Source: Macrostomum lignano
Taxonomy: Eukaryota
Length of the DNA: 64,000 bases
Assembly: GCA_002269645.1 (NCBI GenBank)
Contig: NIVC01003912.1
Span: forward strand, 1 to 64,000
Direction: 5' to 3'
The notes beneath the pieces are model-generated. The model did not search any database and was not told the DNA's origin. It saw nothing but the letters and a program-made list of their open reading frames with translations. Below, piece after piece: positions 11,127 through 59,416 of this stretch. Each line of letters begins with the position of its first letter. Position 1 is the stretch's first letter. The position numbers and the translations under genes are program-made.

Positions 11127-11199
11127 CTAGCCAATTCCAACCCCCGTTGGGGCTTTCCGTCCAAACTCCAATCACAGTTTTTCCACGCAATAAAATTTC

Positions 11200-14109: not shown

Positions 14110-14172
14110 TCTAAAAATTCGAACCCACGTCGCTGCATTAGCAGTTCAGTCTGTTTACCTCTAGGCTAGCTC
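14110..14172 (-). other. tRNA-derived (tRNA-Ser-like) SINE-head remnant
   Basis: The minus strand reads TAGCCTAGAGGTAAA...AACTGCTAAT...ACGTGGGTTCGAAT, with A-box-like and B-box (GGTTCGAAT) motifs and a CTGCTAAT anticodon-loop-like motif. No intact cloverleaf or acceptor stem. Confidence 0.42.
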
Positions 14173-15490: not shown

Positions 15491-15545
15491 TTTAGATAGA
15501 TTAGATAGATTAGATTAGATTAGAAGATTAGAAGATTAGATTAGA
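15491..15545. repeat. (TTAGA)n/(TAGA)n microsatellite at the Helitron 5' terminus
   Basis: TTTAGATAGATTAGATAGATTAGATTAGATTAGAAGATTAGAAGATTAGATTAGA is directly visible. Confidence 0.9.
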
Positions 15546-26100: not shown

Positions 26101-27649
26101 CCCAGCAAACTCACACGAAGGTGTCCGCTAACTCGGGCGTATCCAATTTCGGCAGCAGGCAGCTGATCAGCAGTTGATCAAGCAGAGTCTCGATAGAGAT
26201 CTGACTGCGGCGAAGGCAGAGGCAGGCAGCTGGTGCGCCCGGATAGCTGCTGGACACGCAGGTCTGGTTTTCACTGGCTGCAGTGCGTCATGGCGAGGAG
26301 AATGTTCTATTCAGTCTCGTTCCATAGCAACTAATCGAGTCCTGAACGGATAACTGCCGCAATTTATTTAAGGAAATTCTTCAATGAAGTTATGTTCAGC
26401 TCCCGAATGAATGATCAAAGCAATATCTTTTGGTCTAAATATAGCAGCAAGAATATTTATTCAAAGCTAAAAAGCATTCCGTCCGTCTGATTCGAATCGA
26501 ATATCCGGATACACTGTTAGGCCTTACCTGAGTAGCCTAAAGAGTACAACAATGTCGCACAAAAGCCTGTAAGAAAATATCATCAGTGAAAGTCTTACAC
26601 GTGCAGTCGGTGGATGTCCAGCAGATTGGATGCACCAGCTCCCAGTGCCGGGTCAGCACGAACTCGAACTGGCAGCTGGAGTTTCCGCCACCGCCATCGC
26701 TGCTGTCGCCTGCTGTGCCGTTGAAATCGCCGCAGGCAAGCAGCCGCATGGCCACCAGGCTGCCCGCGCCGCCACCAGTCGCGTAGGCGTTGCCCTCAGC
26801 AGCCCAGGGAATGCTGGTGAGGTTCTCGTTCAGCCAGCCAACGTTCAGGAGCTGACCGGTGAAGCCCCATCTGAGGCTGCTGCCGTTCAGCAGTGGAATG
26901 TGCGGAGCCTGAGCCCTGTGCTCGATATCCGTTGTCATGGTTACGCCAGAGAGCCAAACCGCAAATGAAGTGCTGTTGAAATTGAAAAAATCACTGCCTT
27001 GCAAAATAACAAACGCTTTGCGCAAGGTAAGCCTAGTTATACAATATCTGTATTATGGTATTGAAGAAATTGCTAAAGTAAAAAAATGCACCAGAAGAAC
27101 ACTTCGAACACAGACCACGAACTTCGAGAACGCCTTCTGTTGCGCTCATTCTCGAACAAGAATATTTGAAGGTTTGGGAGCTCTGCTTAGGCAAAGGCCA
27201 GTGGCTACCGGAGTCTGAGATGATGCAGGCACATGTCGACATGCCGATGAAACAGACTTGAACTTCAGACTGCACTAGGTGCCAACAACAGGGGCACCAT
27301 TCGCTTCGAGTAAAGAAAGCCCAAAAATATGCTATTGATAGGAACAGAGAAGGGCCACTCACTTGACGGAGACCAGCCGAATCAGGGGTGCCAGGAACTC
27401 GGCGCTGTCAGCTATGCGAAACGGTTTCAACCCGTTCATCTCTTTGGTAAAACACGCCTGTCTCTGTTCTAGATAGTCCATGTCTGTGCCAGCGAACTCC
27501 TCCAGATTGAAGGTGTATTCAAAGCCATTGTAGTCCACCGTACTCAGGTGGGAACTTGTTGGTGAGCCCTGTACATCCTGGCAGAAGGATGCAGTGAAGA
27601 CGACTGCAAGTGCCAGACTAGACAAGCACTTTGCAACAATAAAAAGCAT
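20176..27649 (-). CDS. Multi-exon secreted or surface protein: signal peptide, divergent C-type-lectin-like region and about 13 sushi/CCP modules
   Basis: Exons (minus): 27649-27363 (MLFIVAKCLSSLALAVVFTASFC signal), 27303-27092, 26997-26599, 26277-26115, about 25424/25364-25274 (frame ambiguous), 25216-24924, 24799-24702, 24407-23288, 23108-22350, 22282-21539, 20831-20176 (or to a donor at about 20279). GT-AG phases match from 24924 downward. Repeated C...Y.C..GY...C...G.W....C modules and many N-x-S/T sites. The 3' end is uncertain. Confidence 0.82.
21159..21340. mobile_element. Degenerate hAT-type MITE in a sushi-gene intron
   Basis: Right end GGCTACGCCACTG, left end CAGTGG..., flanked by TTGAAAAA / CTGAAAAA (7/8 TSD match). 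Confidence 0.5.
24702..24799 (-). CDS. Internal exon of the sushi gene (start of CCP1), absent from the ORF track
   Basis: tttcag|CA AAG AGA TGC ... AAT GCA|gtgagt, encoding KRCLQPHNDSYLLGRGLVALNSSQDLRYLVNA. Phase 1 in and phase 0 out match both neighbours. Confidence 0.75.
26115..26277 (-). CDS. Internal exon of the CTLD/sushi gene, absent from the ORF track
   Basis: ctgcag|CC AGT GAA AAC ... ACC TTC GT|gtgagt, encoding SENQTCVSSSYPGAPAACLCLRRSQISIETLLDQLLISCLLPKLDTPELADTF. The phase 1 start matches the upstream donor at 26599. Confidence 0.68.
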
Positions 27650-27922
27650 TGTGTTGCAAGTCAACCGTATCGAACGAATGCCTGATGAAGCGTCTTATTG
27701 CCCCTTTTTATGCAAGTAGTTCGTACGGCATCGAAACGTTTACTTAATGCCTCAGGCTTGCTTCACTGCAGAAGAAGGCTATGATTGGTTCGCAACTTAT
27801 TCCCTGTAGCTTCAGTTTCATGCGGAGACAGAACTAGACGCGTAATGAATTGAGTTGTGCAAAAATTCGCTATCTCATTTGAATTGGCGCCATTTTATCT
27901 GACTAGCTACCATGAAGGGGCA

Positions 27923-28180
27923 CCAGTGCCAGGGACGCCAGTGCCAGGGACGCCAGTGCCAGGGACGCCAGTGCCAGGGACGCCAGTGCCAGGGACGCCA
28001 GTGCCAGGGACGCCAGTGCCAGGGACGCCAGTGCCAGGGACGCCAGTGCCAGGGACGCCAGTGCCAGGGACGCCAGTGCCAGGGACGCCAGTGCCAGGGA
28101 CGCCAGTGCCAGGGACGCCAGTGCCAGGGACGCCAGTGCCAGGGACGCCAGTGCCAGGGACGCCAGTGCCAGGGACGCCA
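27923..28180. repeat. Perfect 15-bp tandem repeat CCAGTGCCAGGGACG, about 17 copies
   Basis: Directly visible, with no mismatching units. It lies about 270 bp upstream of the sushi-gene ATG. Confidence 0.98.
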
Positions 28181-29637: not shown

Positions 29638-32600
29638 TCAGCTCTCGACTCTCGACTTTGCGATGGACCCGTCTCCCTGAGCATTTCCTGTCGTAGGAAG
29701 GACACGGGTGCGCGTTAATGCAAGTAATGAAAAATACTAAAATCAATTTCTCAGAACAAATATCGCTAAGTAATCTTTTTTACTTGTGAGCGAGTACACG
29801 TTCATTTGTGATTGAGTCGCATAGTTTTTAATATGAAGACCAAACCCTATAGAACAGTGTGTGCAATAAAGTGCCTACTACGTACAGCTTCGCACGCAAA
29901 CAAAAAATGTAGCCCACCGAAAGAGCTCCTTACCGTTTTCCAACGGGGTGGTGCAAACTTGACTGGAATGACACCGACCGGCCAACTTGTCTCCGTTGCT
30001 CTCGGGTCACGCACCGTATTCAAATCATTCCTTAAGTTGCTCTCATGTTCTTCTGGGACTTTAGAGTTTCGGTTGCTCCTTCGCATAAGCAGAAGGACTA
30101 CTATAAAAGTCCCAATTAGGCAAAGGGCACCAACTGAAGCACCAACAGCGATGGAAATAATGTTGGTGTTGTTGCTGCTAGTCCTTACAGTAGGCTGCAT
30201 AGCTGTTTTTACGTCCAGCACCCGCAGGTACTCCCAGGAGACCGTCAGGCTGCTGTTGCTCAGGCCAAGTAGCACGAGCTGGCGGTTGTTCATGAGCTGC
30301 ACCAGCAAATAAACAGCGAAGGAAGCACTAGTGTTGGCACCAGACTGACTGTTGACGGTAAAACTGATAAGAACGCTGCCATTTGCAAACTGCATGTCGG
30401 TTAGTTGCGACTCAGCGAGCCTTAGCTGACGCGCAAGCTGACTCGTCAGGTGGCCTTGAAGGCGGCTTTCGTCTGTAACGACGTTAGAGAATGACTCTGT
30501 GACCCTAATTTGGAGTGCCACAGCTATAGTGTCCGTCTCTGAGAGTGTCGGAGCCGTTACACGGGGTAATATAGTCGTCGTGATGCTGTTCCAAAGCGTT
30601 GCAGCTGAAGTTTGCGTCTCTGAGAGTGTCGCCGACGTACTAGTGGGTTCCTGAGTAGAAGTGATGGTACTCTGAGAAGTGCTAGACAAACTCGGCGCTT
30701 TCGAAAGTGTCGCAGATGTACTAGTGGGTTCCTGAGTAGAAGTGATGGTACTCTGAGAAGTGCTAGACAAACTCGGCGCTTTCGAAAGCGTCGCAGACGT
30801 ACTAGTGGATTCCTGAGTAGAAGTGATCGTACTCTGAGAAGTGCTAGACAAACTCGGCGCTTTCGAAAGTGTCGCAGACGTACTACTGGGTGCCTGAGTA
30901 GAAGTGATGGTACTCGAAAAAGACACAGATGAGGTATGCATCTCCGAAATTGTAGTCGTTAAGCGAGATTCAAGTGTTGTTTCAAACGTCGTCCTTGCCT
31001 GGCCAATCTCACTTTCGGTGGTAGATGGAGCGATGGTTGTCTCCGGTTGGAAGCCTGGTGGTCCCTCAAAAACGCCAATAAATGAAGATATGTCATGGCA
31101 CACACACGTTACGTGCCAGATGCCATCGTCGGTCTGGAATGGCGCGCGAGTCGTGCAGTTATCCGGGGTCCAGTCGGCTCCGCTCCAGCTACGGCAGATG
31201 AGGCTGATGCTACTAAGATTCACAGAGCCACTGATGTTGGTGGTGATAGTCACACCATTGCTGAGGCGTGAAACATTCTGGTTCGCACCGTCGCTCGGGT
31301 GAAATATTCCTACGTAGGCCAGAGGACTGCGTCGCGGGGGAATCGTCGGAGAAGCCACTTTGGCCTGTGGAGTGAGCAGATCCTTGTCCAGCAGGATGGT
31401 TCCGATGCAGGCACCGTCCTGGAAGCAGTCAGTCTGGCCACATGACCAGTTATAGTAGCGCTGCTCGAGATCGGCACCAAGTGCAACCTGTTGACGGACT
31501 GTGAAATTGGATAGACAGTCGGTGCTTCCTGAGTCACATCCCATCTCCAGATTGGCTGAACCGACTGAGTTGAAAGACGTCTTGTACACGCGTACAACGG
31601 TCATTGTGGATGCTGCCGCCTGAGCTAGCGAGTTCGGATTTTGACTGTTGCAGAAGGCAGGAACGGTGTTAAGAATTGTAGCCTGGATATCAGCAGCTGT
31701 TGTCGAATCGAGCGTGGAGTGATAGACTCCGGATGCGATGTCGAGGACGGACTTCACTTCAGTGGCAGTTATTTTGCTTGTTGTTCCACGCTGAGATCCC
31801 GACGCGTTGCGCCTTCGCCTTCTTTTTGCGCTGTCTGGCGAAGCTGGTGAAAACGACTGAGAGTGAAACGCATCAAGGCACTTTTTAAGAGTGTTCAGTA
31901 CCAAGTTAGTTATATACTGGCTGTTGGCTCTCGTTTTCCGAAACAGTTGACAGCTTGTTGCAGCCCTGAGACAGGAAACCGATGGCACACTGAAATTATC
32001 GATAAAGTTTGAATATAATACTGCCCTTTAGTTATTTTACACTATTGACAGGTTGGTTTTCTGTTAAAAAAGTGTATTACTATTTAGCATGACTTATATA
32101 CCTTGTGTCTAAAGTCAGAAGATCCCGAATCACCAGTTCCTGCACCAGCTAATTCTTCTTGTTCTTTTCCTCGGACGACAGGCCAGTATCTGGCTCACTC
32201 AGGATCATTCCGCATAGTGCTGGACCGTCAACTACAATACAATATATCAAATGGATACCTAGTTAATTTGAATTCGAAACTAAATAGAAATAGGAAATAC
32301 GAGCTAACTTAATCGCCCTCACAGCTGTTTGAAATATTGTTCAAGTTGTTTAGTAAATCGTCGAGCTTGGCAAGCGTCAGCTGCTTCGCTTGCACCTGAA
32401 TTACAGTAGTAAATGAGAACCAATCGGAGCCTGCTCCGTTAGAGTCGATGGCTGAAGCTTTGCAGATCCAGTTTCCTCCAGGTAGACGAGTGGTGAGCAG
32501 TCTAGCGGGTGTTGGTTCACTAGTTACGCTGACGCACTGGCTTGATGAATCTTGGCGACAGCACATGGCGCTGTAACTGAAGGACACGTCGGAATCGTCA

Positions 32601-35600
32601 GTGATATTCGGCCATATGGTGAGCGTGAAGGGTGTCTCCAGAGCGGCTCCTTGACTGGGAGTCACAGACAGTGATGCATTCACGCGGAAGTCGAACTGGG
32701 CCTGAGCGGTCCCGGAACTGGCGCTGGCGATCAAAAGCAGTCGGTAGGAGACACCGGCAGCAAAGCTGCAGCTTCGTCCTGGCTTAAGAACCAAAGTGAT
32801 GAAGCAGCGTCGATTGGGTACGCATGTATCGGTCAGCGGCGGTCCTACTGAGCACTGCTGAAGCGACAGCGAGCCAAAGCCAGTCTCTTGAGTATCCACA
32901 GACCATTGAGTCTGAGTGATCTCACTGGAAATCACTAAAGCTGTCACCGGGACAGCAGCGTTTGGATTGATTGGTTTGTTGCTCGGCTCGGTCAAGATCC
33001 GGACTGATGGAGGCGGACGAGACAAAATCTGCACAAGCTTTGTACGACTGGACCGTCGCTGACCCCGCTGACAACTCACAGTGAGGTTCATGAAGCCTGA
33101 GGGTAGCTCGTATACACTGGGATCCGGCCAAGGCACTTGGATACTGTTCGATGATGTCTGAGTTCCATCCGAACCGAAGAAGCATGGTCCCAGTGTGTAT
33201 GTTGCGCATGTAGATTGCCTCACCGTTGGCCCACTTGGTCAGATAGAAGGTGCAAAATGTCGTCTCAGTCGAGTAGTCTGGATCGATGATGTACACGGAT
33301 TCCTGCAGTGCATCGCTGACGCCGAGATCAGAGCGACCTCCGCGGACGAACATGAGAACCAGAGGGCGGCTGATCGTCTCCAGAAGCAAAAAGCCGCACG
33401 CCACGTTGGGCCAAGTCGGCATGGAAGCGCAGACACTCAGGTTGTAGGACTGGCCTCCTTGCAGGACTCCAGATCTCAGTCGGAAGAATTTACCTGTGAT
33501 CGCCTGTTGGTCCACATTGATGGCTCTGGTGCCACCGACGATCTTCCACTTGTACTGCAAAATTAAAATGTGGAGAATCACGCCTGATGGCAGTGTAGGT
33601 GCAAGAGCCTAAAGGTATACTATTGTATAGCAGACAGCAGGTGTACTTTATATTCGATAGTACGAGCTAAGACATTTCAGAGATATGCTCATTGAGATTT
33701 TGTTGCAAATTTTGCTTCTCTTATCATACTATGATGCATGATTTATACAATAAGCGTTCTCAGAGTACTGTTACTTACACTCAGAGTGCCGATAGCCTTG
33801 GTATAGCAAAATGACGGTCGTACAAAAAGCACAGCGCTGTACCAAAGATCGGGCTTCACATACTTTTGCTGTCCGAAGATACTAATGCTAAATGGCGTTT
33901 TTTCAACGAGTCGTTTAACTATGATGCTCGCCGTATTCGACTGTGTTCCGCATTCGTTCTGGGCAGAAGCCGTGATGTTGTATGACTCCCCAGGCGGAAT
34001 CTGAAGAATAAAGCAAGATTTGAGACTGTAAATATTATAATTTTTTTTGAGTAATATCTTCTGACTTAAGCGCTTGAGATCACTAACATCCTTTCCGGCG
34101 TAGAAAGTGACTTCTGTGGAAAACTTTGACTGGAATGCGGCCAGCTCAGTTGCTTGACAAGCTGAGCCTGCAGCACACCGGATGTCCCAAGTGATCTGCT
34201 GCACCATCGATCCTCTGATGGTGGCATACAGGTTGAACGAGTCACAGAGTCCGACGGTGGCCACCTGGTTGGCATCTGATTGAACTCCGGCCAAAAAGAT
34301 GACAGGTGGCTTCCGACCGTTTGCATTCACAACAGCGGTGCTGACACTGGAACTGGTGGCCAGGCTGATGTCGCTGCCACCCACATAAATGATATTCGAA
34401 TTGATGCTGATTCGAGAGCCAGAGCAGATTGTTGCGCCACGTCCTTTCCACACGATGAGAGCGTTTGCCCTCGCGTAGCACTTTGGGCCAGCGCAAAAGT
34501 CGACGCATCAAAGATGGCCGAGCACGCCGTCTGTCGCAGCTGGATGTTTGTGTCGAACTGGAGATACAGGTGGTAGCCACTAGCGTCATCAGTTGCTGAG
34601 AGCAGCACCGGACCCTTACTCGAGCGGATCGAGAACGGCAGAGAGTTGTGCCTGGTCGGTGATTGCAAGAGGTGTAACCGATGTGTCACTTGGTGTAAAT
34701 CATTGCATTCATACTTGCAGCAATAAAAACAAACCACTCACTTGAACACCGCATATGCATCGTAGCTAAGTGTTTGCAGCTTGCAGTTCATGACGCTGAG
34801 CTTCCATTGCAGCGACTGTCGGACTTCGGCCAGCGCAGAGATATTGCAGGTGACGCTTGTCGCGCTGTCGAATCTGGCCGGCACAGTGAGAAAGCCAGTG
34901 CGCGGGTCGCATCGGGTGTGGCGGCTAAGATCGTCGCAGTAGAGAAGGCAGACGAGATCGGGCGTGTTGACGAATCCCTGTCCGCTCACTGGCAGAGAGT
35001 AAACGGGATTTTCTAGCGTGAGTCTGCTCCCGACACTCAAGCTGGACAAGCTGGGAGCTCCAAAAACAGTCAAGGTTCCACCGGAAACGTCCTCGATGAC
35101 TGTAGCACCGGAAGCGGTCAAGTATTTAACCTGTAGAGCGTACTCGCGAGCAACGAGACCCGAGGGCACAGAAAAGCGGAACAGACCAGAAGATACATCG
35201 ATGGATATTGCTTGAAGCTCCGTGTAGAGCGACTGTCAATGTGAGGGCGGAAGAAGTAGTTTGTATTTTATCAACGTAAATTACAAAGTTATCAATTGAA
35301 GCTTATAAATTTTGAGTATTGCTGGACTTGCTATCTATTTTGCTAATAATCGCCTAAATCTACATCTGTAAATACATCTGTAAGTAAACCTTTAGGCGCG
35401 TTGCCACTAAATTAGGCCATTAATCGTCACTATCAGGATAAACGGCTTGTACTATTTTTTTCGCCGCGTTTTACATCGTCGTGTAATTTACATTTGTGCA
35501 ATTTGATAGCGGTGTACGTAAAAGAGCCTTTAGTTATATTATTGCAAAAATGGAATTGATGTCTTACCCAATCGGTCACTTTCAGCAGGCGCAGAGTGAT

Positions 35601-38600
35601 TGAGCTGATTGTAAGGTTGATGCTGCTGCTGCTGATTGTCACTTGCTGATAAGCAGCGTATGACCCCACGCAAGCGTTTCGGGTAATCGTGAAGTGGATC
35701 CGAGCACAGATGTCTCTCTGCGGGTCGCTGGGCAGCAGACAACGACGGCATTTATCGTAAGTCTTTCGGGACGACAACGATGGCTCAGCGACACCGTCAC
35801 AGCCTGTGATACAGGAAGTGTCGTTGCTGCAGCCGCAGGGTCCTACGCCGAAGTTGGCCGCTCTTCCGGTGCTTCCCTCGGTGCAGAAGCCGCACTTATT
35901 GATGCGCGCAGTGCTGTTCACTTTACCATCGCACCACACCGATCTGATGTACTCATCAGCAGTCGCAAATCGACTGGAATTGTAGCACAGGCCAGGCATT
36001 GGCGAGACAAAAGATCCGTTGCATCGACCAGCGCAGTCCTTTCCATAACGCATGGCTTTGCCAGTTCTTCCACCAACGCAGTTGCCACAGTCGTTCCAGA
36101 TCGCTGTGCCATTTGCATCACCGTTGCAGTCGATGCATGAGCGACCATTTCCACCACAGATTTTACAGACATCAGTCTGGAGACCTGACCATGGCTGATT
36201 GTCGCAGCCAACCGTCACTGGACGGACAACTGCCCATCCAGCAGCTGCACTTTTGTTGACCACGCTACTGACAACGAGTGGATTGATGTAGACTTGTTGT
36301 TGGGCGACCAGCTTCTCTGCGGCTGTAAAAGCAAGGATGGCGCGACTGCGGGACCAGGACGCCGGGACGGTTGGCCGAAATCGGATCGTAGCGTTGGCCG
36401 GGAGGAACATCGCTGTGACAGGCCCCGTACCGTTGACGCCATTTGCTAGGAAGTCAGAGAGCTGCAGCGTGGAGGAAGATGTAGATGAGATGCTTCCCAA
36501 ACACTGGATGGTTGAAAAGGCATCCGAAGTTTTTGCCGAGTCCTTAAAACGCGAGAGCATGCGATACTGCTTAAACGCAGGCTTGTCAGCGGATACATTC
36601 AGAGTCTGCCAGGACATGGAGTTCGGCAGCTGGTACTCCAGAACACCACTTGCATCGTCGCCGAGGCCTTGTAGAACGAGAGCGCCCAACTCAAATGTAT
36701 TATCGTCACAAAAGAACAGTGAAACCATGTCGCCGACCCGAATCTGAGTGACGTAGTTTTCTCCATGCCGTTGCAGCATGAAGCCTTGCTCTCGCTGTAA
36801 TTTCTGACTCACGTACTCGTTCTCCCTGTCCTTGAGAACACCAACAGAGAAGAAATCTTTATTCACAACAGGAGGCTGCTCCTTGTGCAGCACGCTGATT
36901 GTGACTTTGACTATCCCACCCATGGCTGTAAAAGGAAGGACGGATGGAACAAGGGAACCAGAGCTGGTGTAGCTGAAGCGAGGCGGCAGTCCACTCCAAG
37001 CCTGGCACATCAGAACGAAGGTCTTGGTAGCGGCATTGCGATTTGGTTCGAATCGGATGTTGGCTTGGCTTGGACTCGGAACGAGAAAGCCTCTCATGTA
37101 CTCGTTGATACCGCTTGTCGTGACTCCACTTCGGAACGTCAGGTTTCCGTAGATGTCAGACCTGGAAGTTACACAAATTACGTTTACACTATATTTATGT
37201 ATATACTGAAGTATAATACTTGAACCAAAACAATTCACATGAGATATTTTTCATTCTCCTTTTATTCCATTATTTCAAGTATTAAACCGAAAAATCTATT
37301 TATGTTTCGGTTCTTGTTACATTTCTTACATTGTTCTGGCAGCAATGTGCCGCCTCTACCTTCGTAGCAGGAGTAAACTTACCACACTGGCTGCACCATG
37401 TACTTGCAGAACACGCCACCGACAGTCGAGAACTCAACCCTTGAGCGCATGTTGCAGAGACTTCGCTCACAGTGCAGATCAATTACGTTGTTAAGTCTTA
37501 GATCGCACACGCTGCTGCTCGGGAAACCGTTTGGACTCAACACCAGCACTGTGGAGAGAGACACATCCAGCACAGAGGTGTCCATGACGCTGAGGCTGGA
37601 TTTATTCAGTGTCACATTGGGAGGTAAAGCTCTCGGAGGTAGGAGCACGAAGCTTCTCATAACGCATTCCGATCCGTCCGGAAGTAGCAGCGAGTACGTG
37701 AGATTGATGAGTACATTTTGAGCGCCGTGTAAGAGAAGCTGGAAGCAACTGTCGGGTCTGATCGGCTCTGGACTTCCGCTGACGTTGATTTTGCGACCAT
37801 CCAACTCCATCTCAGTACCGGATGCCGGGCTAACAAAAATTACTTTGATGCGTGCGGCAGACGCAGCGCCAAGAAGGTGACCTGTGCGACAGACGCCGGG
37901 GTCCGGAGCATCCCTGTACAAGCCCTTGAAGCCAGAAACGAGCTGAGCAGCTGGCAAAAGCCGATGAGGGCGAGGACACAATTGACGGCAATTGGCAAAG
38001 TCCAAGCAGGCACCGAATGCGTGAGGACAGGCAGTCTAAGGATGAGCATTTTGAATGAAGCAATCTCGTCACCGCGCATTAGCAATACAAACAATGAGCT
38101 TTTTTACCTGCTACGAATGTAACTCAAAAAATTAGTAGGCATTCAGTAGAATGCATTCTGTTGCTTACCTCATTGGCGCCCTCGCATATCGTGAAATTTT
38201 GAGGCAGAGACGCACAGAAGCTTGACCCAGCTGTAGCATTCTCACAGATACGAGCGAAGCTCGTATTGTCGAGAAAAATAAGCTAAAGAAGCTAAAAAGC
38301 TAAAAAAAAACAGCCATTTTGATACCTACCTTGCCTTGTGCGTTGCACCGTGCACCCTGATCGACAAGAGACAGCACACAAGCAGCCTTGCAGAGTAGTT
38401 GACCGCTGGGTGGGCAGGAAACCTGTGCAAAACGACAGCAATGGGTTTCATGAAGTTGGAACGACTCGAATAAATCATAAAGTTGCTTGTACCCACTTTG
38501 TATCGGCAATCCTTAGGCTTCTCTGTAGTAATCTGATCATTTGTAGTTTCTGGACCGATTGTTGTACGAGGATAAATTGTCGGCGCTTCGCACAAATTAT

Positions 38601-41600
38601 CAGAAGGAATACAAGTCTTTGAAGCCAAACAGGGAACATATCCAGGATAGCAGATGGATGAATACTGAATTCGGAGAATCTCGTCGCCAAAGTAGTTTCC
38701 GTCAGTCGGAGGCGTGTCCTGCTCCGGCAGCAGTCCGTTCCACAGTCTGCATGTAAAATTCACACTGCCTGGCTGTCTGAGTTGCACATAAAAGTATGAA
38801 CTCTCAACCGATAGCAGTAGGTATCCTGAGCCAAACTTTCTGACAGGAGCACTGCCATAGTAGGAGTAGGCGTGAAACGAATATTCGGTGTAGAGCGACG
38901 ACGCCTCAATGTAGCAGTAGGCAGCCTTGCTCGGCGCCTCTCGACACAGCTGACGAACGTGGTCGTTGAGAGCGGATTCGGGAAACTCGGGCAAACCGAG
39001 ACTGTCGCACCACGGGGCAGAGGCTGTAGACTGGTTCAATACTGGACCTAAAATATTATTTGGGTAGACATCGTCATACATGGATCCAGTGCCGTTCTTT
39101 TCTACCACGACTGTCGGGAATCTAGCTGGTGGCGGTCGCGACTTCGGCGGAAGCAGAAATCCGTAGGTAGGCTGACACTCGGCGACTACCTTGTTGTCCT
39201 TGTTGAAGTAGCGAACCCTCAGCTTTACCCACGATAGACTCGCATTGGAGCCGGCGTAGTTGGACATTCCCAGAGCATCTGCGCTCACGCAGCTGTTGTT
39301 ATCGAGAAGCCTGTCGAGTGTAATTTCCTGTCCGATGCGGCTGTTGTCGAGCTTGTTGGATCCGATTCTCATCACTGGAGGACCCACTTGCTGCACGACG
39401 GTGAAGCGAAAATTCAGATCCGCAGGAATGAAGCAGGAGTTTGTAGGCGACACGGACGTGATGATAATCTTGTTGTTGGGACACGACCTCTTTGCCTCCA
39501 CTTCATCGCACTGTGTCTGTCTTAGACACATGTGGTATCCGGTATAGCATCGGATCAGAGGATCAGTGCTGGTGCTGGTGGCATTGTCACACGGGCTGTT
39601 CATGTAATTGCAGTCGTCCCAAGACATGTGAACACTTCTGTTGTAGCAGATTCCTTGTTTTGTACACGATTTCTGAATATTGGAGAGGTGTAAGATTGAA
39701 AGGCTTTGGAGAGATCAAATCTAAAGAATCACCTTAGCATGAAATGAGTATCATTTTATTAGAATTGCTATTTTCAAAGATCTCTAGATGCTGGCAATGC
39801 CCTCAGAACTGTTAGCTTTCAATAGTTTTCGCATGGTAGTATGTGTAAAATATTACAGATAAGATTTTTCTGCTGCAATTTTTGACACTTTAAGGAGCGA
39901 GTGCATCAAATAGCTGACATTTCTGGCTTCTTGGATCGAAAATCGAGCAAATCATTTCAGAATTGTTTCGGCTATTAATCTAATATTCATAGCGAGGTTC
40001 GGACTATTTATTTATGCACGAACTTTTTAAAGGTCTTAAGCCTTAAACTTTCTAATTAAGCGTAAATTAGTATTGCGTTATTTACTATTGGGGGGGAATG
40101 CTTCTTATCTTTATCTATTCAACTTTCTTTTGTTGTTTTTTTGTTTTTTTCAATAAAAAGAGATTTATAGCAAAACTCCTTGTCCTGATAATTTTAATGG
40201 AATAAAATGATTTGTAAAACTGAAGACAAAATGCTTTTAAGAAAATGTGCTTTTATTTTTAAGGGTTAACATAAGTAATTTTCGTCCCTAGCTTAGTGGT
40301 TCAAATCTTAGTCGCGTAATTTTTTGATTAAAATCGTCATTCAAGTAAATATTTTGGAATACCTACGATGTCAAGGCTTGGGGGAATTGCTTCAATGCTG
40401 TGACTCTTGGAAAGAATTGCTGTGATGTCAAGGTCTTCTGACGGAATTGCTGGTATTTCAGGGCTGACGGAGGGAATTGCTGAGATGTCAAGGATTGCTG
40501 GGGGGGAATTGCTGAGGCGTCAAGGCTGAGGGGCAATTGAAGCTACATGTAGTTTATTAAGAACCGAGGGAACCAGTAGACTGCTAGTCCTCATACACTC
40601 AGCAAAATTGAAAAGTTTCCACCCTCGCACCAGCCGTGTATATTTAGAGTTTCAAAACTGGTTTTGTCGCCAGACTTGTGCCATAGACGATTGATGATTT
40701 CGTCAACACGCACTTGGGCCATAGACAAAAACTTGGGTAATAGACGCCAGACAGGTCGAAGAAAACAGTCACACGGAGCAGACAGCAACAGCTTACAGGA
40801 GTCTAAAATCCACGTTCGCAACCGAACGCAATGCTTCGCCAAATGACCGACCTGGAACGAGCGCGCGCCATTGGCATGCTGGACGCTGGGATTACCTGAA
40901 GCGCTCGATTCGGCGCGAAAATCCGCCGCAAAACGTTGCCCAACTGCGCGAATCACTGTCTACTGCATGGCAACAACTACGGCAAGACTTTCTGCGACGC
41001 CTGGTTCTGGGAATGCCCCGGAGAGTGAGCGCTCTGCTGCACGCACGTGGCTGCTATACGCGTTACTGACCCTGTTCTGGGCAAGTTGTCACCCATGCTC
41101 GCGTACTTTGTTTCTTTGCTGTTCCTTTGCTTCGTTCGAATCCGGATTATATATTTGTCTATGGCTCAAACCACGAATATCTCCACCCACCAAAACGTTG
41201 ACCCTTCGCGCGCTAGGGTGGAAACTTTTCAATGTTGCTGAGTGTATGTATCGCGTCTTATTCTCATTTTGATATTCCATTTTTTAGTCTATGGCCAAGC
41301 CATTCCTGCAGCCAAGACTGGGCATGCTCTGGCCGTGGCTAGCCTGGCCTTGCTTGCGATCCTATGCAGTCTTATTTTGAATGTCTAAAGTCTTATCTAG
41401 AGCGTCAAAAGCGATACTAAAAATGATTTCTCTAGGGGCAGCTATCATAGATCTTATATTCCCTAGATAGGCCACTTTGTATGGCGGTAATAGGGAAAGT
41501 GCGACCGCTGTTTTTCGTCACTTCTGCGAAAAAGCCGACACGGATTGCTTATAAATTTGAGTTCAGTAGCTTTGCGACATAGAAGCTATTTTTTGAGAAT

Positions 41601-44356
41601 TTAATAGAGCTTCTCATGAATTGAAAAAAAAACTACTCAATCAAACTAAGAACTATCCATACACTGCAGAGACTGCTGACGAGATAGATTTCAGTAGTTG
41701 ATTTTCTCGCTATCGCGAGTCTCAATTTTTTTTACATTAGCCTCTATAGCCACATAAGTGGCTAATGAGTGGCCCTTCTTTTGTAAATATGAATGTATAC
41801 GAACGCCGCAGATGCACATAAAGATATTTTAATACACATATCTGTAACATAAAACAAGAAACGAACAAGCACTCACCAAGCCATTTAAAGAACACTGCTC
41901 CTCCAAAGCCATGAGACGTTCTAAACAGGTGCTCATGTTTGCACAGCCATTAGCAGCAGGACAGTCGAACTCACCCTGTGATTAAATACAAATGCGTCAT
42001 CAGTTCTAGCCGAACAAAATTGTTTCTAAATTTGCTTTGGAAAGTATTCCGAAACGATAAAGTCCAACTAGTTACCAAGGTGCAGTTCTTGCCCTCTCGA
42101 CACGAGGTTCCGGCTGGAAGACAGGCTGGAGCTGACAGACACGGGTACATGCCTGAAATACAATCAATCTCGTACTTAACTCGAAGAATCTCGTCTCCAA
42201 AGTAGTTGCCGTCAGTCAGAGACGTGTCCTGCACAGGAAGAAATCCGTTCCACAATTTGCATGTCAGATTCACATTGCCTGGCTGACCCAACCGCAAATG
42301 CATGCGCACATTCTCAACCGATAGCAGGAGATATCCAGGGCCAAACTGTTTGGTAAGAGCGCCACCATAGTAAGAGTAGGTGTAGAACGAATAGGCGGTA
42401 TATAATCTCGGTGCTTCGATATAGCAGTAGGCAGCTTTCCTCGGCGCTTCTCGGCATAGCCGACGAATCCGGTCATTGGGTCCGGGTGTAGGAAACTCGG
42501 AGCGACCGAGACTGTCGCACCACGGTGCGGATGCATTCGAATTGTTGATAGTAGCATTCAGAATATATTCCAGATACAGATAGTCATACATAGTGGCGGT
42601 GCCGTTCTTTCGCAGTACCACTGTCGGGAAGCCAATTGATGGTACTGGCTTCGGCGGAACCAGGAATCCGTAGGTAGGCTGACACTCGGCAACCAAGTTG
42701 TTGTCCTTGTCGACGAAGCGCATCTTCAGCGTAACCCACGAAATTGTCGCATTGTAGCCAGCGTAGCTAGACATTCCCAGTGCGTCTGCGCTCACGCAGC
42801 TGTTGTTGTCGAGTAATCTGTTGAGCTGAATCTCCTGACCAATGCGGCTGTTGTCGAGCCGGTGGGACCCGAGTCTCATCACTGGTGGACCTACCTGCTG
42901 CACAACAGTGAAGCGAACATTCAGCGTCGCAGGCACGAAGCAGGAGTTAGTCGGCGAGACCGATGTGATTATGGTCTTGTTGTTTGGGCACGACCTCTTC
43001 GCTGACACCTGGTCGCACTGCTTCTTTTCCAGACACAAGTTGAATCCACTATAGCAGCGGCCCAGTTCGACAGGCTCGCTTGAGTCTGTAAAATTGTCGC
43101 ATCTCTCACTCGCATAGTCACAAGTGGACCAAGGCAGGTAAAGAGTCCGATTGTAGCAGAATCCTTGTTTCGGACAGAAGTTCTGCGGAAAGTTTGTTTT
43201 AATGTTTTTGAGGAACGCATGAGTCACTTCTCGGGGATTAGAATCAGACATGCGTCCTCATGCTTACCATGTTTCGTTCGGAACAGTTTTTTTCGATGGT
43301 TTGAAGTTCTTCGACGCAGATCTCTATAGTTTTGCAGAATTTCGTTGTCGGGCAGTACATTTGAGTCTAAAATTTTGCGTCCACTTTAATATTTTCACAT
43401 GTTTAAAAACACTGAGGGATTGATTGTGTAAAGTAATTTATAGCTTGCGCTTAATTTTTTGTGCAGGCTCGTATTTGTTATACTGAACAGTTATGTTCAG
43501 GACTGCGGATGTTTATTTTCTTACATGATTTTACGAATCTAGCAGATTCTTGGCCTACTTGGTGAACAGAGAGACATACTCGTTCACCCCAAGTTAACTT
43601 GTAAGTGTTGACACCCGAGAGCACTTTCCCCTGTATGCAGACTTGATGCATTAATTTTGTAAATGGCTTGTGTACATGTAACTTTTTATGATAATTTAAG
43701 ACGGCATAAAAATGATTAAAATGCACGTGAACACGGCTTTTACATGTCCATGTGTGCATGAATCATGCGATTTGTTGGCTCAACTGATAACGAACAGAGT
43801 CGACGGGTCCTCCCATTGTTAAACGCTAAACTTTTTTCTTGAGTTCTTTGCACCCCAGTGTAGGTAATGAGGTAATTCATAGAACGTGCACAAACTGACA
43901 CATTTTACGGTGTAATTGAGCATTCTTTTTAAGAAATGTTTATAATGTAACAATTCTACAGTTGCGTCGCTGGGGGTGGGGGATACAACGATGTTTCCGC
44001 GAATCCTGAGTTCCCAAAATGCCGTAGTCACAGGGCAGATGTCTGACGCCTTTTATAGTTATTTAGAAAGTTAAGAAAGTTTTTTAGCCTACCAGGTATT
44101 ACTAATGATAAAGGTACTTTTTTAATGCATACGTAAAGCAAAAATTACAAAAACCCTATTCTATTTGACTATGGCTTCGACATTTTCAGTTATCTCTCCA
44201 TTTCAAAATCCTAGCTACGCCACTGCAATTCTACATAAGCCAGTGAGTCAGTCAATCGCTTACTGCATCCGAACAATTTCCAATCGCCAATACGTCTTGA
44301 GGTCCGGTTAGCAGCAGCTGCAGCACCAGCCAGAGTCCCAGCATGGCGCCTGCCAT
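29638..44356 (-). CDS. Giant (~3150 codon) polycystin/REJ-like single-pass receptor: signal, 2-3 Cys-rich modules, cadherin-like, Cys-rich CGxC repeats, IPT/TIG, REJ, GAIN/GPS, S/T stalk, SEA, TM, tail; possibly pseudogenised
   Basis: 13 GT-AG exons with matching phases: 44356-44264, 43182-42076, 39672-38497, 38422-38330, 38035-37383, 37161-35568, 35232-34742, 34651-34088, 34000-33779, 33554-32323, 32231-32102, 31989-29934, 29688-29638 (sum 9462 nt). GPS: CRSWSGADWTPDNC...VTCVCHDISSF. REJ-type YKWKI...LRSGVLQGGQSY...IDPD and VNP...QWSV motifs; TM IISIAVGASVGALCLIGTFIVVLLLM. Lesions at about 34490 (-1), about 33225 (+1) and a TAG at 32149-32151. Domain names are by motif recognition, not by HMM. 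Confidence 0.8.
30625..30915 (-). repeat. 81-bp (27-aa) coding tandem repeat in the mucin-like stalk (STITSTQEPTSTSATLSKAPSLSSTSQ), about 3.6 copies
   Basis: GAGAAGTGCTAGACAAACTCGGCGCTTTCG recurs at 30674, 30755 and 30836. Confidence 0.93.
40365..40588 (+). mobile_element. Remnant related to the 11127-15545 Helitron (type-B repeats, possible CTAG|T end)
   Basis: About 5 degenerate GGAATTGCTGAGATGTCAAGG units, the reverse complement of the type-B repeat, followed by CTAG-T at 40584-40588 in the same relative order as in the full element. Confidence 0.5.
40596..41244 (+). mobile_element. Non-autonomous Tc1/mariner derivative (649 bp) with decayed transposase N-terminus
   Basis: 30-bp TIR CACTCAGCAA(A/C)ATTGAAAAGTTTCCACCCT (40596-40625 / 41215-41244, 1 mismatch) and a TA TSD on both sides. 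The internal MTDLERARAIGMLDAGIT* (from 40843) is the Tc1 paired-like HTH start motif. Confidence 0.9.
43959..44225. mobile_element. hAT-type MITE (267 bp) in intron 1 of the REJ receptor
   Basis: Ends CAGTTGCGTCGCTGG / CCTAGCTACGCCACTG, with an exact 8-bp TSD CAATTCTA at 43951-43958 and 44226-44233. Confidence 0.88.
44264..44356 (-). CDS. First (signal-peptide) exon of the REJ/GAIN/SEA receptor, absent from the ORF track
   Basis: ATG GCA GGC GCC ATG CTG ... GAT GCA|gtaagc, encoding MAGAMLGLWLVLQLLLTGPQDVLAIGNCSDA (31 codons). The phase 0 end joins ccgcag|AAC TTC TGT at 43182. Confidence 0.8.
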
Positions 44357-44689: not shown

Positions 44690-45595
44690 TTGACTCTTAG
44701 TGGGTGCCCCTGTCTCCTAGGTTGGGTGCCCCCACTGCCCCTGTCTCCTAGGTTGGGTGCCCCCACTGCCCCTGTCTCCTAGGTTGGGTGCCCCCACTGC
44801 CCCTGTCTCCTAGGTTGGGTGCCCCCACTGCCCCTGTCTCCTAGGTTGGGTGCCCCCACTGCCCCCGTCTCCTAGGTTGGGTGCCCCCACTGCCCCCGTC
44901 TCCTAGGTTGGGTGCCCCCACTGCCCCCGTCTCCTAGGTTGGGTGCCCCTGTCTCCTATAGGTGGGTGCCCCCACTGCCCCTGTCTCCTAGGTTGGGTGC
45001 CCCCACTGCCCCCGTCTCCTAGGTTGGGTGCCCCCACTGCCCCCGTCTCCTAGGTTGGGTGCCCCCACTGCCCCTGTCTCCTAGGTTGGGTGCCCCCACT
45101 GCCCCCGTCTCCTAGGTTGGGTGCCCCCACTGCCCCCGTCTCCTAGGTTGGGTGCCCCCACTGCCCCCGTCTCCTAGGTTGGGTGCCCCCACTGCCCCCG
45201 TCTCCTAGGTTGGGTGCCCCTGTCTCCTATAGGTGGGTGCCCCGTCTCCTAGTTTGGGTGCCCTTGTCTCCTATAGGTGGGAGCCCCTGTCTCCTATAGG
45301 TGGGTGTCCCGTCTCCTAGGTTGGGTGCCCCTGTCTCTTAGTTTGGGTGCCCTTGTCTCTTATAGGTGGGTGCCCCTATCTCCTAGGTGGGTGCCCTTGT
45401 CTCAGCTATAGGTGGGTGCCCCTGTCTCAGCGATAGGTGGGTGCCCCTGTCTCAGCTATAGGTGGGTGCCCCTGTCTCCTAGGTGGGTGCCCCTGTCTCC
45501 TAGGTGGGTGCCCCTGTCTCAGCTATAGGTGGGTGCCCCTGTCTCCTATAGGTGGGTGCCCCTGTCTCAGCTATAGGTGGGTGCCCCTGTCTCTC
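44690..45595. repeat. Minisatellite: 31-bp unit GCCCCCACTGCCCC(T/C)GTCTCCTAGGTTGGGT grading into 21-25 bp units GCCCCTGTCTC(CT/AGCT)(AT)AGGTGGGT
   Basis: Period 31 from about 44710 to 45200, then shorter variants to 45595. Confidence 0.95.
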
Positions 45596-53146: not shown

Positions 53147-56100
53147 ATGAGCACTAACATAGAGCTGCGAGATGCTGACTCTGCATTAGATTACCTTGCT
53201 AGCCAGGTGTGCGGTCCAAGCAGTCAGTTTCTATCTGCTGGCCGCCCCTTATGCGGCCTTCGAGTCCACGGTGTAGCCGGAGTTACTCACATCTCCGAGC
53301 TGCTGTCCCGGTCGCATCCGACCGAAGTCCGGGCAATCCTTGTTCACTACTTGGGCCTGCTGGCTGCCGGCACTTTCACTGCGCCAATGTCGGCCTTGAG
53401 TCCGCTGACGCCGCATCTGCTTGAGTCTGGCGACTCTGGCCTGGTTACGGTTCTGTGGCAAGAGCTGTCAGCTGACGTCCGAGCCGAGGTCTTTAGCCGG
53501 CTATTCACCGATTTGCACACGCTGATGAAGCGTCAAAGACTAACTGAGACTTTCTACAAAGCTGTCCTGCAGATGATTATTGAATTGGTCGAATTGCAAA
53601 TTGATGGTGTCCGAGTATTTGCCAGATTCCTGCTCCAGATGGAGAACTGGAATTACAACACTGAGGTGCCGGTGCTGTTCGAACGGCTGTCTTTTCTGCC
53701 CGCGTTTCTCTGCTTATCTCCGTTCGCGTCGGAGTCTGTAAGTTGCTGTAATTAATTGGTCACTTTTAAACCAGAAATAGTTAGTAGAAAGCTGAATGAG
53801 CAAAATTGCCTCACAGTCACTGTTGGTTGTGCGCCTGCTTGAATGCCTACAAATCATGCAAATATTTATTTACTTGGGCATATGGCGACTTAAAATAATA
53901 ACGCTTTCAATAAAAATGGGTTGGGTACCATGTGTAGAAGTGAAATGATTTTATGCAACCTAGCGGAGCTCAACGATAGTTTAAAAAGCAAACTCAATGT
54001 GCACCATCGCATCATCGTGTTACCCAGTTTGAAGTGGCCGAGGAACTGTTCCCAGTGGTGGACAATCTGAGCCCAGAAGAGGTTTTGATGAGTCATCGAG
54101 TTATCCACACGGCTCTGGACGTGGCCCGCGATCGGCAGTACCAGCTGCTCTATTCGCTGCTACGCGAGCCGCAGTGCCGCCCGAAGGTGCTGCGTCTGCT
54201 CTGGCGCTGCTGCCGGCTCGGCTCCAGCCGCGGCCAGATGCAATTCGACGAATCGTCCGCTCTGAGCGAAGGCTTCCTGTTGAATCTGCAGGCGACTCTG
54301 TGCAAATTGGCCGCTAAGATTCCATTGGACAAAGTTGATCGGGCATTCTTGCTGAGGCCCGACTGTCCGTTTCCGATCAAAGTGAGTTCAGTGCAGTGCA
54401 CTGGCGCATCAAGGGGTAGGTGGTGCATCAAGGTGCAGGTGGTGCAAGGGTCAGGTGGTGCATCAAGGGGCAGGTGGTGCAAGGGTCAGGTGGTGCATCA
54501 AGGGGCAGGTGGTGCAAGGGACAGGTGGTGCATCAAGGGGCAGGTGGTGCATCAAGGGGCAGGTGGTGCAAGGGTCAGGTGGTGCAAGGGTCAGGTGGTG
54601 CAAGGGACAGGTGGTGCATCAAGGTGCAGGTGGTGCAAGGGTCAGGTGGTGCAAGGGTCAGATGGTGCATCAAGGGGCAGGTGGTGCAAGGGACAGGTGG
54701 TGCATCAAGGGGCAGGTGGTGCATCAAGGTGCAGGTGGTGCAAGGGTCAGGTGGTGCAAGGGTCAGATGGTGCATCAAGGGGCAGGTGGTGCAAGGGACA
54801 GGTGGTGCATCAAGGGGCAGGTGGTGCATCAAGGGGCAGGTGGTGCAAGGGTCAGGTGGTGCAAGGGTCAGGTGGTGCAAGGGACAGGTGGTGCATCAAG
54901 GGTCAGGTGGTGCAAGGGACAGGTGGTGCAAGGGACAGGTGGTGCAAGGGACAGGTGGTGCAAGGGACAGGTGGTCCAGGTGATGCAGGTGGCAGGTGGT
55001 GCATCAAGAGGCAGGTGGATTAATGCATCATCACTAGGTCCATCATCACCCATAAATAACTAATTATCAGGATGACGATGCCCGCCTGATGGCGAACGCC
55101 GGCGAGGTGGCGGCCTGGCGAGGCGAGCTGGGCACCGAGGCGGCCAGCTTCAACACGCAGGGCTTCTTTCTGGCCGCCTACGCGCATCACATCGGCCTGA
55201 TTGCGACGCTGCGCAAGCATAAGCGCAGACTGCGCAATCTGCGTGAAGCGGAACGCATCCTGGACAGCGGAGAGCAGGCGCAGAATGCCGACAGGATTCG
55301 GACATTTCTCAACAGTCAGAAGCGAGCTAAACTGTGCGATCAGGTGAGCGTTCCGTGAATAATTCAAGTTCCGTACCGGTGTCTTTGAATCATTTATTAA
55401 CTCACCCGTTAAAAGCACTAAAACCGTGACAAGAATGGCTAAGGAGTCATTGCAAACCACTCACTAGTGGCTCTCTAGCGACTCTGGGGCGAATCTTGTA
55501 ACCTTTTACCGGCTCAATTGACTGTTGGGTCACGAGCGCATCACGCCTGAGTTGCAGAAAGTCGTCTAAAAATCGCTGTGTTAGCGCTTAACTTTCTACT
55601 AACTCAAGTAGATTATGCGCAGTAGGTTGTCTTATTCATAAAGTGACGCAGATGCGCTTTAGAGATGCAACTCGGTGATTCTACAGCGACTCTAGCACGC
55701 TTCAAATACAACTCTACCAGAGTGACTGTTGTCGCCCAAGAGTCTTTTTAGAGTCGCAGATAATAGAACACCTCAAATTGACTCATTGACGACTTTTTGT
55801 CGACTTGTACCGAGACATCTTTATCGTATTTTACCTGTGTTACCTGCAACGACTATGGGGCGACGCAAGTGACGCTAGGAAGCTTCTATGCCTAGGTACC
55901 GTTTTCATCGGATTGACTCTGCTTTAGTATTTAGAGAATAATAGTGCTTATGAAGACTAAGCTCGGGTTATGAAGACAATTAACAATTGTCGCTAAGTTG
56001 GCATTGCTTACACTGATCCATCTCCGCTAGGCGGCAATCTACCACGAGTCGCTGCTGAGAGACGCCATGTTCTACTACGATCAGCTGGCCGACTGGCTGC

Positions 56101-58668: not shown

Positions 58669-58873
58669 ACTGGGCTGGTGTAGCACCCACAGACTGATTG
58701 CGTCACCTCTGCATCATCAAATCTTTTTATTACATTTTGATGCATTTCTTTGTTGAGGTCCTGTCCACACTAGTTAAAATCGATGGCCCTTACTGAAGTA
58801 ATGTGCGAGACAAGGCTTGACTGTCTCAGGTAAGGTGGCTTCTCTATTAGACGTTGGTGATACGTCTAATAGG

Positions 58874-59416
58874 TGAGATCTTAGATCTACTGTCTCATAG
58901 GTGAGATCTCACTGCTACTGTCTCATAAGTGAGATATCACTGCTACTGTCTCATATGTGAGATATCACTGCTACTGTCTCATAGGTGAGATATCACTGCT
59001 ACTGTCTCATAGGTGAGATCTCAGTGCTACTGTCTCATAGGTGAGATCTCACTGCTACTGTCTCATAGGTGAGATATCACTGCTACTGTCTCATAGGTGA
59101 GATCTCACTGCTACTGTCTCATAGGTGAGATATCACTGCTACTGTCTCATAGGTGAGATCTCACTGCTACTGTCTCATAGGTGAGATATCACTGCTGCTG
59201 TCTCATAGGTGAGATCTCACTGCTACTGTCTCATAGGTGAGATATCACTGCTACTGTCTCATAGGTGAGATCTCAGTGCTACTGTCTCATAGGTGAGATC
59301 TCACTGCTACTGTCTCATAGGTGAGATATCACTGCTACTGTCTCATAGGTGAGATCTCACTGCTACTGTCTCATAGGTGAGATCTCAGTGCTACTATCTC
59401 ACGGGTGAGATCTCAG
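58874..59416. repeat. 28-bp minisatellite CTACTGTCTCATAGGTGAGAT(C/A)TCACTG, about 19 copies, 3' of UBE4B
   Basis: Period 28. The C-variant units contain the perfect 12-bp palindrome GTGAGATCTCAC. Confidence 0.96.

Follow-up and report, generated by a model that had tools for sequence, protein, structure and literature searches.

Do two large, cysteine-rich exons repeated within one gene of the flatworm Macrostomum lignano encode a known extracellular domain, and what might they contribute to the receptor that carries them? The exons, termed here module exons 1 and 2, are read from the minus strand (43182-42076 and 39672-38497) of contig NIVC01003912.1 (assembly GCA_002269645.1), of which positions 1 to 64,000 were analyzed; this whole stretch of 64,000 nucleotides (nt) is referred to as the window. 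An interpretation made from the letters of the DNA alone, called here the sequence-only reading, had taken the two exons for colinear paralogues that encode a lineage-specific module at the distal tip of a receptor. The analysis shows that they descend from an old duplication and that both copies are kept by selection on the protein. It further indicates that each belongs to a two-exon cassette, that the sequence of the module has no match among known domain families, and that the cassettes occupy the membrane-distal end of a REJ-domain surface glycoprotein, from which they probably project as a rod bearing the recognition surface of the receptor.

Paralogous module exons under purifying selection

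Both module exons are free of stop codons and are bounded by a pyrimidine-rich stretch ending in CAG upstream and by GT downstream. At 1107 and 1176 nt, both have lengths divisible by three and are therefore symmetric exons in phase 0; the 369 and 392 codons counted in the sequence-only reading are confirmed. The encoded modules align by BLASTP with 232 identities over 361 residues (64%; two gaps; E value, 1e-176), where identity had been put by eye at roughly 55 to 65%, and all six identical blocks quoted at that time are found in the alignment. Module 2 carries an additional Pro/Thr-rich tail of ~30 residues. Exactly two copies of the module stand above noise in the window, as judged by tblastn and by a profile hidden Markov model (HMM) run against all 1569 stop-to-stop frames of the six-frame translation.

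Nei-Gojobori estimates over 365 aligned codons, a comparison that the sequence-only reading had suggested, gave 0.257 nonsynonymous (dN) and 0.904 synonymous (dS) substitutions per site between the modules, with a dN/dS ratio of 0.28. The ratio ranges from 0.13 to 0.40 along the exon and is lowest (0.13) at codons 62 to 121. Within the identical peptide blocks, third-codon-position identity is 0.66, versus 0.67 at all identical residues, and the longest perfect nucleotide run shared by the modules measures 26 nt; these two values rule out gene conversion as the source of the blocks. The introns flanking the two modules show no more similarity than shuffled controls. The synonymous differences inside the blocks and the unrelated introns thus indicate conservation at the protein level and not recent gene conversion. 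The module pair is an old duplication, of which both copies are retained by selection on the protein, and both modules are under purifying selection.

A two-exon cassette

The sequence-only reading had presented the module exon as the repeating unit. This exon is duplicated, but the unit also takes in a mini-exon of 33 codons that precedes each module and encodes four cysteines. The repeat is a two-exon cassette composed of the mini-exon followed by a module exon of ~370 to 390 codons, with every exon in phase 0. Mini-exon L0, ahead of module 1, resembles the first mini-exon of a paralogue (E value, 1.7e-8). Mini-exon L1 starts 100 nt past module 1 and was brought to light by a database gene model (P0008, described below). 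The likeness of a diverged mini-exon, L2, to L0 and L1 was judged by eye. The first coding exon, which encodes a signal peptide, is located 900 nt upstream of L0, in line with the earlier placement of the modules at the distal tip. Its ATG and gtaagc donor were read directly, with the sequence MAGAMLGLWLVLQLLLTG...GNCSDA before the GT, and it aligns by tblastn with the N terminus of paralogue P0007 (48% identity; E value, 1e-4).

An exhaustive profile search returned P0008 (UniRef100_A0A1I8FVC6), a 2438-residue protein of M. lignano that maps exon by exon onto the window with ~99% identity over the cleanly modeled exons. The window therefore represents the P0008 locus or a near-identical allele or homeologue. 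Module exon 1 matches residues 1 to 155 of P0008 at 99%, and in the model a single protein runs from the C-terminal part of module 1 through L1 and module 2 to the REJ and transmembrane exons downstream. The two module exons thus fall in one predicted transcript, and not in the separate transcripts that the sequence-only reading had named as the case that would speak against it. Most cassette introns measure 74 to 100 nt, with 294 and 221 nt around the putative third unit discussed below; the intron between L1 and module 2 (41876-39673) measures 2204 nt and may contain an insertion.

The cassettes at the distal end of a REJ-domain receptor

The gene encodes, in order, the signal peptide, two cassettes, a doubtful third unit, a REJ domain, a GPS-like motif, a Ser/Thr-rich stalk, and one transmembrane helix, with several further exons of the same gene between the exon at 37161-35568 and the REJ exon (Table 1). 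The REJ domain is recognized by PF02010 with 39.1 and 42.5 bits against a cutoff of 25 (E values, 4.8e-10 and 4.5e-11) over profile positions 176 to 432. The GPS-like motif that follows the REJ region (CRSWSGADWTPDNC...CVCHDISSF; CRSWSGADW...) fits the pattern C-x2-W...W...C...C-x-C-x-H by eye, with H-D-I-S in place of the canonical H-L-T/S cleavage triad. Pfam returned no GPS or SEA match in the REJ-receptor protein, and P0008 splices out part of the motif. A Ser/Thr-rich stalk of ~300 residues comes between the motif and the transmembrane helix, so the motif is not juxtamembrane. The stalk is 55% Ser/Thr and includes an 81-nt coding tandem repeat of 3.6 copies (94% matches), which encodes 27-residue Ser/Thr-rich units (STSATLSKAPSLSSTSQSTITSTQEPT); this mucin-like stalk may vary in length. 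The single hydrophobic transmembrane helix is followed by a short tail that runs to the end of P0008. A PLAT domain and a multipass region of up to 11 transmembrane segments are not present in the locus protein, which gave no Pfam PLAT match. This predicted architecture suggests a type I REJ-domain glycoprotein of the cell surface that crosses the membrane once and has the module pair at its N-terminal end, distal to the membrane.

In the ectodomain, past the REJ domain and before the GPS-like motif, is a polybasic KRRRRR segment; furin-type processing at this site could release the distal half of the protein together with the modules. A search for homologues of the REJ backbone found none, and it is uninformative because the word index also missed the locus's own model. 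No paper pairing Macrostomum lignano with a REJ domain was found in the literature, and the top-ranked papers of a broader search did not mention Macrostomum.

An orphan module with a predicted tandem beta-sandwich core

Pfam returned nothing for either module exon at E values of ≤1 and nothing for the full mini-exon/module/mini-exon unit at ≤10, including ZP, cadherin, Ig, GPS, EGF, and LDLa, and a profile search of PDB sequences returned nothing for the ~280-residue core. This is in keeping with the sequence-only reading, which could not assign the module to a known family. At the edges of the module, two alignments fall short of significance: the tail (C-x6-C-x5-C-x6-C) pairs with the leading half of the LDLa repeat in PDB 2m7p (E value, 0.2), and residues 21 to 59 pair with EGF2 of factor IX (E value, 0.93). 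Unlike LDLa, the tail corresponds to the first half only, lacks the acidic calcium cage, and has no Pfam match, and the LDLa-like and EGF-like segments together make up less than a quarter of the module. A match to glycoside hydrolase 99 in the mini-exon/module-head region of P0007 (31.2 bits; E value, 1.6e-7), below the cutoff of 33, was rejected as spurious because its score was summed over two stretches in near-identical repeats and neither the modules of the window nor the full unit gave anything at E values of ≤10.

An AlphaFold2 model of the whole exon, built from six sequences, was poor (predicted local distance difference test [pLDDT], 53.5), and its Foldseek matches to pilins, kinesins, and phage proteins (TM-score, ~0.14) are meaningless. 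The core alone, modeled from eight sequences, reached a pLDDT of 69.7 and a predicted TM-score of 0.54, with beta strands at core residues ~30 to 147, helices at 148 to 189, and beta strands at 195 to 284. The conserved cysteines fall in two groups of four, at core positions 9, 25, 73, and 111 and at 166, 187, 197, and 252, with two more in the tail, and two N-glycosylation sequons are present without exception in the eight sequences. Foldseek retrieved a consistent yet generic set of tandem beta-sandwich pairs from the PDB, including RET CLD1-4 (E value, 4e-4), classical cadherins, intimin, and contactin, at TM-scores of 0.17 to 0.26 (0.17 to 0.21 for the cadherin pairs) and identities of at most 12%. 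Comparisons by hhalign of the first with the second half of the module, and of the module with the rest of the receptor, gave probabilities of at most 4%; a 17-column C-x-x-W-x-G match aligns the TC[KR]LWNG strand of the module with ICRSWSG of the receptor's GPS-like motif (E value, 0.01).

The predicted core thus comprises two beta-sandwich domains, braced by disulfides, with a helical insert between them. By sequence, the module seems to be an orphan unit outside the known domain families that behaves like an adhesion-type tandem beta-sandwich unit. The resolution of the module into known domains throughout, which the sequence-only reading had set against itself, is seen in part, with edges that are weakly EGF- and LDLa-like and a core resembling a cadherin-like pair, but none of these likenesses holds at the family level. 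The automatic name of the locus model in UniProt is "ZP domain-containing protein," and those of sibling models disagree (ZP, EGF-like, Disintegrin, and GON); none is reproduced by Pfam, and the origin of the paralogue's "EGF-like domain-containing" name was not traceable. No ZP match was found by Pfam in the whole of P0008 at E values of ≤1 or in overlapping pieces covering the locus protein from residue 561 onward at ≤10. The conflicting names point to borderline profile matches on Cys-rich sequence.

Distribution and history of the cassette

A word-indexed search retrieved six relatives of the module. A full HMMER pass over 1.84 billion (1.84e9) protein representatives returned eight proteins at E values of ≤1e-3, six of which are real. 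Four of these belong to M. lignano or are M. lignano-like, and the other two are translated from short contigs. The bacterial repeat proteins P0010 and P0011 (E value, ~5e-6), with 6 and 26 short repetitive stretches, were rejected as compositional or repeat artifacts. Relatives other than gene models come from four contigs of 1.0 to 1.7 kb (sequencing run SRR28338156, ENA assembly ERZ27315222, JGI metagenome 3300038379, and Logan contig P0002); a pattern scan of JGI metagenome contigs with the module alignment gave 56 pattern matches, none of them confirmed. From these searches the module appears to be lineage restricted, as the sequence-only reading had supposed, with M. lignano as the sole organism-level source in addition to the four short contigs.

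The module exon ends at the same place in all three foreign contigs that were read (L001, L002, and L003), and in two of them a four-Cys mini-exon lies ~100 to 140 nt from it, which indicates conservation of the cassette, with the same exon limits, in other genomes. P0005, P0013, and P0009 each span a module-end/mini-exon/module-start junction. The paralogue models P0007 and P0012 (A0A1I8FW02 and A0A1I8J2W3) begin with a signal peptide followed by four and six tandem cassettes, respectively. The copy number is therefore two at this locus, or three with the diverged unit, versus at least six in a paralogue, and the phase-0 exons together with the tandem units of A0A1I8J2W3 bear out the proposed expansion by exon duplication. 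For the core of module 2, identity is 88% with unit 2 of P0012 and 70% with module 1, and no other sequence exceeds 71% identity with module 1. As module 2 is closer to unit 2 of P0012 than to module 1, the duplication that gave rise to modules 1 and 2 predates the split of the paralogous genes. The last four cassettes of P0012 (units 3 to 6) are nearly identical at the protein level and have either arisen by very recent amplification in tandem or are an artifact of assembly or annotation.

A putative third unit

The sequence-only reading had also described a third, diverged copy, beginning with a single exon at 38422-37383. That frame holds many stops, and the interval resolves instead into mini-exon L2, an intron of 294 nt, and an exon with a phase-2 end that is continued from 37161. 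The unbiased scan of the window with the module profile left the third copy in the noise (E value, 40), but HMMER on the spliced protein alone, a search space of one, gave 5 to 6 bits (E value, 3e-4) and a colinear alignment of profile positions 167 to 320 with residues 123 to 281, in which four cysteines are aligned, including those of the EC...LLPP and C-x-x-W-x-G motifs. The cysteine spacings are similar (48/38/56/31/55 in the module and 48/27/53/33/60 in the third unit), and a four-Cys mini-exon precedes the unit, as in the cassettes. Smith-Waterman z-scores against shuffles were 1.0 to 2.3, hhalign gave a probability of 1.4% (E value, 0.036; 40 columns), and no homologues were found for a profile-profile test. 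The third unit is thus a plausible but unproven diverged copy of the module.

The exon at 37161-35568, which ends this unit, also encodes a Cys-rich region with repeated CGxCxG and DCxG motifs (CKICGGNGRSCIDCNGDANGTAIWNDCGNCVGG...). Pfam gave no match to this region, and the PDB search with the whole protein gave a faint match to ADAMTS5 (E value, 0.75).

A probable recognition rod and its alternatives

REJ/PKD1 receptors are known to exchange their distal recognition domains: those of sea urchin sperm have lectins, and polycystin-1 has PKD, LRR, and WSC domains. The outline of the M. lignano receptor appears closest to that of SpREJ1, with which it shares a large size, heavy glycosylation (predicted here), the REJ domain, few transmembrane helices (one here), and presumed recognition domains at the distal N terminus; a GPS-like motif follows the REJ domain. 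The sperm receptor SpREJ1 is heavily glycosylated, has lectin domains at its distal end, and binds to fucose sulfate polymer in the egg jelly; it has either one or two transmembrane segments, as does SpREJ2, and some SpREJ proteins also lack the PLAT domain and the multipass region (PMC1934368). The tip of the M. lignano receptor differs from those of the SpREJ1/PKD1 family in being formed by an orphan cassette and not by C-type lectin, EGF, or PKD repeats. The receptor also departs from the PKD1/REJ family in having neither PLAT nor the 11-transmembrane channel-like region and in its Pfam-invisible GPS-like motif, which carries H-D-I-S and lies ~300 residues before the membrane.

We consider it probable that the two cassettes form an orphan tip of this REJ receptor and that their modules make up a projecting rod with a recognition surface. 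The rod would be stiff and glycosylated and would extend beyond the REJ domain, the GPS-like motif, and the mucin-like stalk, carrying the recognition surface as the distal C-type lectin domains do in sea urchin REJ1. Since every cassette exon is in phase 0, gain or loss of a whole cassette is frame neutral; unequal recombination between cassettes could add or remove them with the frame intact and would alter the reach and binding repertoire of the receptor. Several points weigh against this proposal. The recognition surface, and with it any binding of a ligand by the module, is what we infer from position and by analogy. The core model is of moderate confidence and derives from eight similar sequences, and TM-scores of 0.17 to 0.26 are too low to define a fold family. 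The presence of both module exons in the mature mRNA is suggested by database gene models, of which P0008 contains locally odd stretches and skips mini-exon L2, and the repeated units 3 to 6 of P0012 may be an artifact.

The module could instead be a very diverged member of a known family (a cadherin- or Ig-like pair, a ZP-N plus ZP-C module, or a GAIN/GPS-like domain) that has moved beyond profile detection in a fast-evolving flatworm lineage, an origin that is possible if unlikely. Tandem cadherin-like or Ig-like ectodomains are used for adhesion or recognition, and the core shares with RET CLD1-4, classical cadherins, intimin, and contactins two consecutive beta-sandwiches in an extracellular, tandem setting. 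It differs from these pairs in its helical insert of ~40 residues, its eight bracing cysteines, and its small Cys-knot caps, and no Pfam match to the cadherin profile was found in the module, where calcium motifs were not rigorously looked for. The likeness to a ZP module, a structure of two beta-sandwich halves in which eight cysteines (4+4) are conserved, lies in the core of ~260 to 280 residues with the same two-part logic, and the UniProt name of the locus model agrees with it, although the names of the sibling models contradict one another. However, the cysteine spacing of the first half (16/48/38) seems unlike that typical of ZP-N, and the modules are N-terminal and tandem, whereas ZP modules are usually membrane proximal, single copy, and followed by a furin cleavage site. 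ZP and GAIN structures are absent from the 50 best Foldseek matches in the PDB, a weak test at a pLDDT of 69.7. For GAIN/GPS, the 17-column C-x-x-W-x-G match stands by itself, and the C-x-C-x-H-L-T part is absent from the module. Against all of these families stand the empty Pfam search of the full unit and the low TM-scores and identities of the structural matches.

A role of the modules mainly as spacers or mechanical beads that set the length or elasticity of the ectodomain, as proposed for the PKD repeats and REJ region of polycystin-1, is rather unlikely. The variable copy number and the beads-on-a-string layout with small Cys-knot connectors would suit it, and the REJ region of PKD1 proteins has been discussed as an elastic element (PMC1934368). 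However, strict blocks (RFTVVQQxGPPVMR and ECQPTYGFLLPP) are kept at a dS of 0.9 and across contigs that are 50 to 60% identical, which implies more constraint than a pure spacer needs, and the low dN/dS at codons 62 to 121 points the same way. It is very unlikely that the module exons are skipped, mutually exclusive, or placed in different transcripts so that the mature protein carries one module. Skipping of symmetric phase-0 exons leaves the reading frame intact, and P0008 does skip L2; on the other hand, A0A1I8FVC6 joins both modules, the paralogue models place four to six in series, P0005, P0013, and P0009 cross the junctions, and both copies are under purifying selection. In a bolder and quite doubtful version of the proposal, the core would be a new extracellular domain family with a fold unrepresented in the PDB, arisen in macrostomid flatworms as a fast-diversifying, copy-number-variable recognition head, possibly for gametes or mating partners.

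If that last version is true, the locus offers a tractable case of de novo or ultradiverged domain birth followed by exon-cassette expansion; should the module prove to be a very diverged cadherin/Ig pair with a spacer role, the case would be an ordinary one. Flatworm genomes commonly encode Cys-rich ectodomains of orphan type, but the present one is clean, conserved, and expandable. A receptor of the REJ type whose orphan tip is restricted to one lineage and built from duplicated cassettes is new without being categorically so. M. lignano is a tractable model with RNA interference, transgenesis, and well-studied mating biology, and the locus provides a practical system for the birth and expansion of extracellular domains and for recognition by REJ receptors outside deuterostomes. 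For annotation, the unsupported ZP, EGF-like, Disintegrin, and GON names should be replaced by a dedicated family model.

Features of the locus and its neighborhood

Table 1. Coordinates of the receptor gene and of other features in the window
Feature	Position	Strand	Description	Evidence or remark
First coding exon	44264-44356	minus	Signal peptide MAGAMLGLWLVLQLLLTGPQDVLAIGNCSDA; 31 codons, phase 0	Followed by GT donor
Mini-exon L0	43268-43366	minus	33 codons; TQMYCPTTKFCKTIEICVEELQTIEKNCSERNM; C-x5-C-x5-C-x10-C	AG/GT bounded
Module exon 1	42076-43182	minus	369 codons; 1107 nt; 20 Cys; 11 N-x-S/T sequons	No stops; 64% identical to module 2
Mini-exon L1	41877-41975	minus	33 codons; GEFDCPAANGCANMSTCLERLMALEEQCSLNGL	AG/GT bounded; between modules in P0008
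Module exon 2	38497-39672	minus	392 codons; 1176 nt; 20 Cys; 7 sequons	Open frame; splice sites present
Mini-exon L2	38330-38422	minus	31 codons; VSCPPSGQLLCKAACVLSLVDQGARCNAQGK; diverged, four Cys	AG/GT bounded; phase 0
Putative third unit, first exon	37383-38035	minus	TACPHAFGAC...ECVMRSFVLLPPRALPP...	Ends in phase 2, continues at 37161
Exon	35568-37161	minus	First ~65 codons end putative third unit (FVLMCQAWSG); remainder other ectodomain	99% to P0008
Cys-rich region	35570-36330	minus	CGxCxG and DCxG motifs	Within preceding exon
REJ-domain exon	32309-33223	minus	REJ domain	Pfam PF02010
Large exon	29847-31988	minus	KRRRRR, GPS-like motif, stalk, transmembrane helix, short tail	Motif coordinates; tandem repeat
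Polybasic KRRRRR	31809-31826	minus	Ectodomain	
GPS-like motif	31080-31196	minus	After REJ region	Fit by eye
81-nt tandem repeat	30625-30915	minus	Coding; stalk	3.6 copies
Transmembrane helix	30087-30161	minus	Single, hydrophobic	
E4 ubiquitin-chain elongation factor gene	53147-57806	plus	Ufd2P_core and start of U-box	E values, 1.6e-60 and 3.6e-48 (Ufd2P_core)
Sushi/CCP gene	20176-27664	minus	Signal-peptide-like start at 27664, then multiple Sushi/CCP repeats	Sushi, E value, 3e-9 in 24398-23190; weaker matches in 22175-20176
Tandem arrays	44705-45593		31-nt and 25/67-nt units (TGCCCC..GTCTCCTAGGT..GGG)	
C-rich satellite arrays	9942-11126; 11208-12008; 12095-12490; 12961-13808; 15545-16192		~30-nt units	41 copies in 9942-11126
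Minisatellites	17731-18379; 27923-28180; 54410-54975; 57811-58402; 58864-59415; 60037-61159		Periods of 15 to 30 nt	

The E4 ligase gene adjoins the receptor gene upstream and is divergently transcribed, and the Sushi/CCP gene is a separate gene downstream. Tandem arrays lie ~350 nt upstream of the receptor start codon, in the presumed promoter region. The C-rich arrays within 9942-16192, of which the last shares its repeat unit with the first, account for the strongly negative GC skew at 10 to 14 kb. Several of the minisatellites give long spurious open reading frames on both strands, and two lie inside introns or exons of the E4 ligase gene.

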